From Octopus sinensis (taxonomy: Eukaryota), in assembly GCF_006345805.1 (NCBI RefSeq), contig NC_043026.1, positions 4,588,001 through 4,652,000 on the forward strand: a stretch of DNA of 64,000 bases, written 5' to 3'. The notes beneath the pieces were generated by a model. The model was not told the origin of the DNA. It worked only from the letters and a program-made list of their open reading frames with translations, and did not search any database. Of this stretch, positions 1 to 2,330 are shown in pieces; positions within the stretch are counted from its first letter, which is position 1; the number at the start of each line of letters is the position of its first letter. The translations under genes were made by a program, and so were the position numbers.

Positions 1-600
1 CCATTTCACTGCGACATTTGTGGTAAATCATTCTTTCAGAAAGGTAGCTTGACGGCACACAAACGTCTTCATAAAGGAGAGAAGCCTTATCACTGTAATG
101 TCTGAGGTACATCATTCTCTGACCAAAGTATTTTAACTACTCACATACGTGTTCATACAGGGGAGAAGCCATATCACTGCAATATCTGTGGCAAGTCTTT
201 CTCTAAAAGTATTACCCTAACTAAACACAAATGTATTCATACAGGGCAGAAACCATTTGACTGTGACATCTGTGGTAAATCATTCTCTCGAAATTATAAC
301 TTGACTGTACACAAACGTATTCATACTGGGGAGAAGCCTTGTCACTGTGATGTCTGTGGTAAATCATTCTGCCAAAGTGACAGCTTAGCTACTCACAAAC
401 GTTTCCATATAGGAGAGAAGCCATATGACTGATATCTGTGGTGAATCATTTCCTATAAGTACTTAATTAGTCACTGATATATCTATACAGGAGAGAAACC
501 AGATGATTGTGGAGTCTGTGGTAAATCATTCTCTTCAGCCAGTCTCTTCACTACACACAAACGTATTCATACAGGGAAGAAATCATTTGACTGTGACGTT
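1..600 (+). pseudogene. C2H2 zinc-finger array (about 6-7 fingers), disabled, 5' end outside the window
   Basis: Frame 1 reads [34 protein letters not shown]...HTGEKP repeats. There is a nonsense codon at 103-105 and a frameshifted finger with stops at 430-477. Confidence 0.93.
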
Positions 601-2330
601 TATGGCTACCCTCGTCACATCTACTCTGATAATGTTTATTTCTATGTCCTCTTCAGGAGACACTCTATTCTCAGATGTTACGATCTATATGGACAAATGA
701 AATGGCAGTGGGAACTGCCTTTCCCTGTTCACCCTCACATTGCTGTTTTCCAAGGAACTCTTAATGTCCCCGACACTCAACTCAACAGGGTTCTTCTTTA
801 CAAGTATCAAGACCGGTCGTCTGCTTGCCTTTTACCCATTAAAAATCCTTATATCAGAAATCTAAATCTACGACTCAAAGAAAAGGAGAATGACCAAAAA
901 CTTGTCATTGGCGAAATATGTAATCTGTCCAATGGACAGTTGGTGGTGTCCGACATCAAGCATGATTGCTTGTTGTACATTTCTGAGGAAGGAGACATTG
1001 TGTCCAGATTATCTCTGCTGTCTACAGCCACAGATATATGTTAGTGGGGTTCTAATAATATAGGGGTCACAAGATGGTCGCCAGTGTTTTACAGTCCCAA
1101 ATGAAACCTCCCCACAATTTCTATGGTGAATGTATAGATAAAAATGTTTATCTGTTAGACAACATGCCTATGTTTGTTATAAATGATTACGCTTTGGTGG
1201 TTAAGGATCTCGTTACAAATAATCAGCTTAATATTGACATGGCACATCTATTTTATAGAAACATCTGTGTCAGTGAAATGTTGTCTTCTAAATTCTATCT
1301 ACAGGATCTCCAGGTTTCCGAGACAAACAACCAGTGCAGATTTTTCGTTTGGTTATTACTGAAAACAACTTGATTGCAATATACGACAGGAAAAATAAAA
1401 AACATAAGAAATTCATATTTGATGGTCATCTTTTGGATTCTATCAAATTGAATGTCTCTCCCATCAATATGTGTCGATGGCAGTCAAACCAACTGGTTAT
1501 TACAACTGGTGATGGTGACAACCAAATGTTGACATTAAAAGTTGAATTTCAATTGTCATTGGTGATTTAGCAGACAAGAAATAAATATCATTGTATTGCT
1601 TCTTTGTCGGATGGTCTACTAGTATATAATTGGGATGGAGATGAACGTACTTTGTATGTCATTGATTTTGATGAAATCCATTCGACTGTGAGTATAATGA
1701 AGCAAATAGACATATCCGAGACATTATTGATGAGAGGTGGTGAGGTTATTGATTATGTTGAAGGCATATGCAATATTACAGTGACTGTTAATGATGTCAT
1801 CCTCATTAGCAACAACAAATTCATCAATTTCCTCAGTAGTGATGGTCAGTATTTACATTCAGTTAGACACTACATGAAGTATATCAGTATTCATAGCAAC
1901 ATAACAGTTGATGAGAAAAGATATCATCTCTATGGTATATTTAAAAACATGGTGTGTTTCACACAGACTGGTGACCACAGCAAAATATATTTAAATGAAA
2001 GAATTTGTGTATGTAAAGTGGGCTTTAGCTGTATAAACAGTAAAGGGCCGAGATTTATTGGAAGTCACAGAAATAAATTGTATGTTGAAGGTTTGTTTCA
2101 GCTTAATCGGGAGAGATTCCCTGTTTGTCGGTTACAAACAGACGACTGTCCTGTTCAAGTAAAAGATTTTGATGTCTCTGAGGAAGGAAAGACAGTTGTG
2201 TGTGAAAAAGCCAATAATGGAAATGTTAAAATATTCGATAGAGACGGGGAGTTGCTATGTCATAGAGATGTTGGAAGTTTAGTTGGTGGTGTGTATTTTA
2301 CAGGAGAAAGAGGGATAATGGTCACACTTA
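601..2330 (+). pseudogene. Partial, disrupted paralogue of the 1393-aa tandem beta-propeller gene (equivalent to about aa 614-1320)
   Basis: 601-1060 is nearly identical to 39121-39590. ORFs 697-1044, 1074-1373, 1334-1570 and 1604-2401 are collinear with the intact protein (e.g. VQVKDFDVSEEGKTVVCEKANNGNVKIFD). It has a ~315-bp deletion near 1070, stops and frameshifts, and is truncated by a SINE. Confidence 0.92.

Follow-up and report, generated by a model that had tools for sequence, protein, structure and literature searches.

Positions 1-2329 of the window, by which we mean the whole 64,000-nucleotide stretch of Octopus sinensis DNA analysed here (NC_043026.1, forward strand, 4,588,001 to 4,652,000), are very probably one copy of an ordinary fusion pseudogene that decayed before it was spread by segmental duplication. 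In it a C2H2 zinc-finger (ZNF) array is joined to a fragment of a gene of a beta-propeller family. The fusion junction itself is real, of single origin and multi-copy, and we infer that the chimera never functioned. Of the features expected of a functional fusion gene a real junction is present; an uninterrupted open reading frame (ORF), selection that keeps the frame and a complete domain are lacking.

A first-pass annotation of this DNA had proposed that a ZNF-propeller chimera formed in a region mixing ZNF arrays with propeller-family genes and then decayed, and saw in it domain shuffling toward effector-bearing ZNF proteins. Both the chimera and its decay are borne out, with stops and frameshifts flanking the join in all seven copies. 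The shuffling proposal does not hold: the break lies inside blade 5 of a propeller, there is no intact ORF, the lesions are ancestral and stop gain is neutral. An intact chimera, whose absence the annotation had itself named as evidence against its idea, was not found among these data.

The junction and its copies

Translation of the forward strand shows that frame 1 is open at 478-1041 (188 codons), preceded by TGA at 475-477 and ended by TAG at 1042-1044, and alignment places the join of the finger array to the propeller fragment at 600/601, both as originally described. The upstream fingers are likewise in frame 1, running from position 1, though they are interrupted by stops at 103, 430, 442 and 475. 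The ORF 478-1044 is composed of 41 ZNF codons and 147 codons of the propeller-family fragment. As the criterion of C2H2 membership we took a C-x2-C-x12-H-x3-H unit scoring above the Pfam gathering threshold, and the ZNF portion 478-600 (ORF residues 11-31) contains one, with 25.7 bits for zf-C2H2 (PF00096) against a cut-off of 25.2; the zf-H2C2_2 score on the junction ORF, 28.4 bits, is under its cut-off of 40. Downstream, 601-1071 is 96% identical to window positions 39121-39591 over 471 nt and 1072-2325 is 71% identical to 39908-41255, the 316 nt between these two blocks being absent from the fragment. The features of the chimera are as follows.

1-417, + strand: upstream C2H2 fingers of the ZNF part, frame 1; only this copy has the TGA at 103-105, the six others reading TGT
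418-489, + strand: dead finger, a unit of 78 nt vs 84; stops 430, 442 and 475 common to all seven copies
490-600, + strand: last intact finger (CGVCGKSF...HKRIH), linker, and a next finger broken off at 600 with just its first Cys (DCDV)
600-601, + strand: fusion junction GTT/TATGGCTACCC, identical in all seven copies, with 1 nt of exact microhomology
601-1071, + strand: block A of the propeller-family fragment, family residues 614-770, frame 1; TAG 1042-1044 in all seven copies
1071-1072, + strand: point of a frameshifting 316-bp (3n+1) deletion relative to window 39592-39907, in all seven copies
1072-1306, + strand: segment B of the fragment, frame 3; protein identity to any paralogue 60-67%
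1307-2329, + strand: segment C of the fragment, frame 2; 37-nt (3n+1) deletion near 1310; TAG 1567-1569 in six of seven copies
2330-2609, no strand: 3' truncation point of the window copy, shared with locus L004; interspersed repeat from about 2336, present at least 15 times in the window

The window begins 147 nt past the ATG of the paralogous copies. No in-frame ATG occurs across 478-696, so translation within the ORF 478-1044 could not start upstream of the junction. The 147 codons 3' of the junction merely retain the parental frame of a copy that is 96-97% identical, and hence the length of the ORF requires nothing beyond a one-in-three in-frame join; ORFs of at least 150 aa number 24 in the window. 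It had been allowed from the start that the in-frame join could be due to chance, and with one event at those odds we agree. The ZNF parent of the chimera starts MEKSEKLKELIFPEEKG, and its unfused form would be expected to carry fingers beyond '...HCDV-CGKSF'.

In addition to window 1-2329, the copy set comprises six loci (L002-L007), which were found by means of the 366-aa gene model P0054 and its 90% cluster neighbours. All six lie on Octopus vulgaris OX597841.1 (GCA_951406725.2).

L005: 6.69 Mb
L002: 6.93 Mb
L006: 8.29 Mb
L007: 8.33 Mb
L004: 8.44 Mb
L003: 10.31 Mb

These loci span 3.6 Mb of one chromosome, with both strands represented. Window 1-2329 aligns end to end with each of them at 97.4-98.0% identity, and pairwise identity among the six is 98.0-99.7%. 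Comparison of the flanks shows that the duplicated unit is larger than the chimera, since it also holds a propeller-family gene and a segment homologous to window 47897-50568. The window copy and L004 have in common the 3' truncation at 2329 beside the interspersed repeat as well as the next 5 kb, and in the other five copies the fragment extends to about family residue 1756. In the alignment, the clustered differences that set the window copy apart from the others at 582-589 and 824-830 resemble short conversion tracts.

Shared lesions and the loss of constraint

The lesions found in all seven copies are the stops at 430, 442 and 475, the TAG at 1042, the 316-bp deletion at 1071/1072 and the 37-nt deletion near 1310, and in the seven-way alignment length is constant at the major lesions. 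The TAG at 1567 is present in six of the seven, L003 having an 8-bp deletion at that site. Private lesions are the TGA at 103 in the window, a 1-bp deletion at window position 43 in L005 and, in L006, an indel that removes the start. An additional T at 1404 is common to the six O. vulgaris loci, and the window retains the ancestral frame there. None of the seven copies has an uninterrupted ORF leading from a start codon across the join. The distribution of these lesions indicates that the last common ancestor of the seven copies already had stops and frameshifts both upstream and downstream of the join.

In order to assess selection we counted variants among the seven copies. There were 90 variant sites in the formerly coding parts, spread evenly across codon positions, of which 68 were nonsynonymous (0.76 vs 0.80 expected, p=0.36). 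The control, intact paralogues of the propeller family, gave a nonsynonymous fraction of 0.78 vs 0.79 expected. Since the intact genes are equally near neutral by this measure, the ratio of synonymous to nonsynonymous changes is powerless as a test of neutrality here and was dropped in favour of a comparison of stop gain, on which the argument rests. New stops among the chimera copies numbered three against 4.9 expected, in addition to four private indel lesions. The intact paralogues had no stops against 8.7, 6.5 and 5.7 expected (P = 1.6e-4 to 3e-3, with P=1.6e-4 for 8.7). The chimera copies gain stops at the neutral rate and their frame is not maintained. The ORFs of the partner family, for their part, stay open while their amino-acid sequence varies freely. 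In principle, the retention of seven copies could reflect selection instead of hitch-hiking.

Placing lesions on the copy tree orders them against the duplications, not against the join. It is therefore possible, though we hold it to be the less probable course, that the ZNF array and the propeller fragment were both already pseudogenes before they were joined, so that a chimeric protein never existed. In its favour, no placeable lesion is younger than the oldest duplication, a mere 125 to 170 nt separate the stops of the dead finger from the join on its 5' side, and decayed ZNF arrays abound in the region, for example that at 13985-15064 with its two stops. Against such an early death, segments B and C are distant from any paralogue (66-80% nucleotide and 55-70% protein identity) and yet over 1.7 kb their damage is limited to two nonsense codons and two frameshifts. 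Furthermore, segment C after the TAG at 1567 is fully open over 1570-2401 (277 codons) despite its divergence, which suggests that most of the divergence of the fragment arose under coding constraint and that its death is fairly recent for its age. A join of two dead sequences is in any case a variant of the best explanation, since the product is still a pseudogene.

The propeller-family partner and the joining event

The partner had been called a propeller gene, and this can be upheld at the level of the fold. The window contains one paralogous member of the family.

37282-42704, + strand: paralogous propeller-family gene; 1393-codon ORF to 41463, then eight frameshifting indels relative to intact paralogues

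The 1393-aa protein encoded at 37282-41463 has no Pfam match and no PDB sequence match, and Pfam matches are also absent for the family models P0006, P0043 and P0046; in one distant relative, P0049, NHL reaches 18.5 bits, below the cut-off of 20. An AlphaFold2 (AF2) model of family residues 195-880, built on a 19-sequence family alignment, has a mean pLDDT of 67, rising to about 80 in the two N-terminal units. Its secondary structure is entirely beta, each unit having 23-24 short strands, the number that makes up six four-stranded blades. Foldseek searches of the PDB gave more than 1,600 matches at E<=0.001, and tandem-propeller proteins stand at the top of those listed, the best being IFT-A subunits, Utp21, DDB1 and LRP2 (E about 1e-18 to 1e-14). 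The TM-scores are low (0.19-0.27), which we attribute to the relative orientation of the domains. Four-stranded antiparallel blades, the structural mark of a propeller, are thus seen in the AF2 model, and no curated repeat model recognises them. The predicted units resemble the tandem propellers of WD40, NHL and YWTD proteins in having four-strand blades in six-bladed units; unlike those proteins, the Octopus family is claimed by no Pfam model and matched by no PDB sequence.

The 42 database proteins that make up the family come exclusively from Octopus vulgaris, O. sinensis or O. bimaculoides, and about 25 or more of its members have roughly 1,780 aa, the size of full-length proteins. A single 29.2-Mb chromosome of O. 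vulgaris harbours about 30 of the models, not all of them complete, and in this species one exon of about 5.4 kb holds the coding sequence. When 1.84 billion representatives were scanned exhaustively with HMMER, only 27 clusters were returned, in which every named member is from Octopus. This partner family, found here only in Octopus and combining several predicted beta-propellers in a single coding exon, represents more interesting biology than the chimera.

The first-pass annotation had taken the gene at 39121 as the source of the fragment, but it is a relative only. Block A (601-1071) shows 94-99% nucleotide identity to every paralogue tested (three genes) and 93-96% protein identity to the top-ranked paralogues; for segment C the best paralogue, P0042, reaches 70.6% protein identity. 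The intact paralogues are sharp-edged patchworks that exchange sequence in patches: the window gene and the L003 gene, for example, are 46-78% identical until 38631 and 93-100% identical thereafter. Block A is a block homogenised across the family. With block A near-identical to all paralogues tested and segments B and C far from all of them, the alignments point to another, divergent paralogue as the donor, one that has no surviving intact copy in the databases. We also considered whether the split between 96% and 71% identity marks two events or a recent copy of the 39121 gene, and rejected this since block A is closely similar to all the paralogues compared, which are themselves patchworks.

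Two non-homologous sequences meet at the junction. The breakpoint sequences are GTT/TGTGGT in the ZNF parent, TTC/TATGGC in the family parent and GTT/TATGGC at the junction. The T at 601 is all that both parents share exactly; T[G/A]TGG is shared with one mismatch. We took at least 2 nt of exact homology (typically 2-20 nt) as the criterion for microhomology-mediated end joining. The microhomology-mediated joining that had been proposed from 'tgt ggt' and 'tat ggc' is therefore not supported, there being a mismatch in this stretch and only 1 nt of exact homology. Among random joins, about 44% would show microhomology of 1 nt or more, and a single nucleotide fails to separate microhomology-mediated from classical end joining. 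On the family side the junction falls at residue 614, which is residue 420 of the AF2 model, in blade 5 of the second predicted six-bladed propeller (245-488). About 69 of its 244 residues are left in the fragment, and pLDDT at the break is about 70-78. The break is hence inside a predicted propeller and not at a domain edge, and the fragment carries no complete domain of the kind expected in a functional fusion gene.

Short, with a single exon, 84-nt units and TGEKP linkers, the left partner is typical of the poly-finger genes in birth-and-death C2H2 clusters, and it sits among other arrays, several of which have stops. It differs from them in that its array is cut within a finger and runs into unrelated coding sequence. 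The array most useful for comparison lies in the window itself.

13985-15064, + strand: second C2H2 array, about 13 fingers with two in-frame stops; about 73% nucleotide identity to the ZNF part of the chimera

It has the N-terminus MEKSEKLKELI (from about 13915), as does the ZNF part of the chimera. In the window (13985/37282), and likewise at locus L001 (10001/47064), a ZNF gene lies 5' of a family gene on the same strand.

These observations are consistent with a model in which one event of non-homologous end joining fused a short C2H2 ZNF gene, broken within finger eight, to a multi-beta-propeller gene of roughly 1,780 codons at codon 614, each parent having a single exon. The likeliest event would be a deletion running from the ZNF gene through the intergenic DNA into a downstream family gene on the same strand, with loss of the ZNF 3' end and of 613 codons at the start of the family gene. 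Deletion is suggested by the same-strand arrangement of ZNF and family genes together with the missing hallmarks of retroposition; no pre-fusion locus was found in these data. The join would have been in frame by chance, and the fused product would then have evolved unconstrained, gaining stops and frameshifts on both sides. Segmental duplication would subsequently have carried the fusion pseudogene to at least seven copies, six of them on one O. vulgaris chromosome.

Insertion into a ZNF array of a 5'-truncated, LINE-mediated retrocopy of the propeller gene would produce a similar picture, for the fragment is 5'-truncated, an intronless parental coding sequence would give the same appearance and elements bearing reverse transcriptase are plentiful nearby. 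We consider this origin improbable. Poly(A) is absent at the 3' end of the long copies (L002 13555-14080), the fragment ends about 30 codons before the natural stop, a target-site duplication is not evident, and ZNF sequence does not restart downstream within 8 kb in L002 or L003. In the window, too, neither the fragment nor the ZNF array continues past 2329 or past the LTR element. The fragment hence shares with processed pseudogenes the 5' truncation of an intronless coding sequence, but not the poly(A), the target-site duplication or the resuming host sequence.

Public gene models and related chimeras

The six O. vulgaris copies of the chimera are annotated as protein-coding (CAI9742754, CAI9742764, CAI9742798, CAI9742802, CAI9742865 and one more), with proteins of 366-499 aa each named after an O. 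sinensis uncharacterised protein. Exact-protein look-ups of the chimera models gave matches only on the genome assembly. P0054 (366 aa) has the MEKSEKLKELI N-terminus, seven fingers, and the same junction and the same end (...TATDIC) as the window ORF. It and P0187 reach 366 aa by means of an intron at window-equivalent positions 401-490, a 90-nt stretch with GT..AG ends that corresponds to the dead finger; TAG 1042 terminates both, and 1101 + 90 gives the gene length of 1191 nt. After '...TATDI', P0065 and P0186 each continue in a different piece further downstream and in this way skip the stop, the deletions and the frameshift. Collectively the models are mutually inconsistent threadings of one pseudogene, with introns placed over lesions.

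Were the annotation right, the locus would be a working two-exon gene whose 366-aa protein, seven fingers followed by a 147-residue propeller remnant, was amplified as something useful. The models P0054 and P0187 (366 aa), P0184 and P0185 speak for such a gene, as do the GT..AG ends of the 90-nt intron, its length divisible by three and the keeping of seven copies. If that intron is truly spliced, L002, L004 and L007 can be read without interruption from ATG to TAG 1042, and L003 reads likewise given the same intron, model P0065 splicing out just ahead of TAG 1042. We nevertheless find a working gene very hard to credit. Homology shows the 'intron' to be a finger unit that carries two indels, and three of the seven copies have been disabled independently within the coding sequence (the TGA at 103 in the window, the frameshift in L005 and the loss of the start in L006). 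Variants are even over codon positions, stop gain is neutral, and P0065 and P0186 use other, inconsistent introns across the lesions. Moreover, the remnant of about 1.5 of six blades plus a low-confidence stretch would, judging from the AF2 model, be unlikely to fold.

Similarly slim are the chances that the ZNF promoter drives transcription of at least one copy and that splicing then removes the dead finger, to yield a co-opted 366-aa protein or a regulatory RNA, in which case the repeated copying would reflect use, not hitch-hiking. That the junction is an assembly artefact, a chimeric contig join, has only the general risk of repeat-rich clusters in its favour and may be set aside, as the identical junction is found at seven loci, each with private substitutions and indels and distinct flanks; the misassembly that the first-pass annotation had named as fatal to its reading is thereby ruled out by the same join at the six other loci, which carry private variants.

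Two other models were considered. P0001 (2053 aa; seven fingers and a complete family protein) has the appearance of an intact chimera but is a merge of two complete genes: its ZNF exon stops one codon before its own stop and splices across 36 kb to an acceptor just 5' of the family ATG, and its ZNF gene differs from that of the chimera. P0186 was rejected as a product of the window locus, its identity being 82-87%.

Hominoid USP6/Tre2 is a chimera of TBC1D3 and USP32, one of the chimeric genes formed by juxtaposition and spread by segmental duplication. There, as here, unrelated genes were joined by a DNA rearrangement in a duplication-rich region and the junction was copied with its flanks; unlike USP6/Tre2, the octopus chimera has no intact ORF, bears lesions that predate its amplification and evolves neutrally. 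A literature search gave no account of a ZNF-propeller chimera or of the propeller family. Expansions of C2H2 zinc fingers in cephalopods have been described (PMC12513265), and the terms pseudogene, chimer- and fusion are absent from that paper.

The chimera matters mainly as a correction of annotation: the six gene models would inflate both C2H2 counts and the apparent novelty of domain architectures in comparisons among cephalopods. In addition, its single junction with nested lesions provides a dated marker for tracing segmental duplication over 3.6 Mb of one chromosome.

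Probable conversion and diversification among the propeller genes

We compared three intact paralogues of the multi-beta-propeller family, one in the window (37282-41457) and one at each of two O. vulgaris loci, L001 (47074-52511) and L003 (612-6224). The nonsynonymous fraction between intact paralogues was 0.78, against a neutral expectation of 0.79, whereas no stops were observed in them where 5.7-8.7 were expected. The ORF is kept open while its amino-acid sequence changes freely, as is typical of multigene families undergoing diversification.

Identity between the window gene (37282-42704) and L003 612-6224 is 46-78% up to position 38631 and 93-100% beyond it, giving a patchwork with abrupt edges. 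High-identity islands of a similar kind are found in the pseudogene copies (39121-39591 and 41032-41631 in window coordinates). Together, the patchwork and the islands suggest that gene conversion is frequent among family members, pseudogenes included.

When set against its intact counterparts at L001 and L003, the window gene shows eight frameshifting indels at 41457-42704, 3' of its 1393-codon ORF. It is either a C-terminally truncated gene or a young pseudogene.

A distant relative, the database protein P0063 (331 aa), has ankyrin repeats and a RING finger (zf-C3HC4_3) immediately N-terminal to the region matching the family's N-terminal region. This layout gives a hint of a possible origin of the family from a RING/E3-type propeller protein.

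History of the chimera copies

The window copy of the ZNF::propeller pseudogene (1-2329) was set in a colinear comparison (window 1-7440 against L004 10148-17577) beside its counterpart at the O. vulgaris locus L004. The two copies have in common their 3' truncation and the sequence downstream, yet L004 carries the +T at window position 1404, as do the other five copies, and within 1-2329 it is nearer to those five than to the window copy. The history of the copies is not tree-like, whether through conversion or through a 1-bp reversion.

Mobile elements and repeats

The following elements lie in the window:

2336-2609 and at least 15 other sites, e.g. 19386-19830, 35085-35448, 46715-47406, 58971-59404 and 63194-63614: interspersed repeat, ~250-440 nt
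3232-4164 (-): separate 310-aa ORF, weak GIY-YIG match
7434-13320 (-): LTR retrotransposon, LTRs of 594 bp, 98.1% identical
15603-16194 and 25574-26180: two short tandem arrays, periods ~52 and 61 nt
17183-19135: 650-aa ORF with RT and PHD-like domains; second copy at 23464-25499, 79% identical
20555-35641: ~2-2.6 kb units repeated many-fold in both orientations, 82-95% identity

One copy of the interspersed repeat falls precisely where the chimera is truncated at its 3' end in the window and in L004. The ORFs of the LTR retrotransposon (DUF7041/gag-like, protease, RT, RNase H and integrase) are split among five reading frames; the element is missing from L004, which is elsewhere colinear with the window. 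The 310-aa ORF may be Penelope-like.

ZNF genes and a merged protein model

The second ZNF gene of the window (13915-15141) has the N-terminus MEKSEKLKELI, the same as that of the chimera's ZNF part. One stop in its N-terminal region and two in its array of ~13 fingers indicate that this gene is probably also a pseudogene.

The public O. vulgaris protein model P0001 (2053 aa) joins a complete seven-finger ZNF gene (L001 10001-10717) to the next family gene (47064-52508) via a 36-kb intron, and is likely an annotation merge; its ZNF exon stops one codon short of the ZNF gene's own stop.
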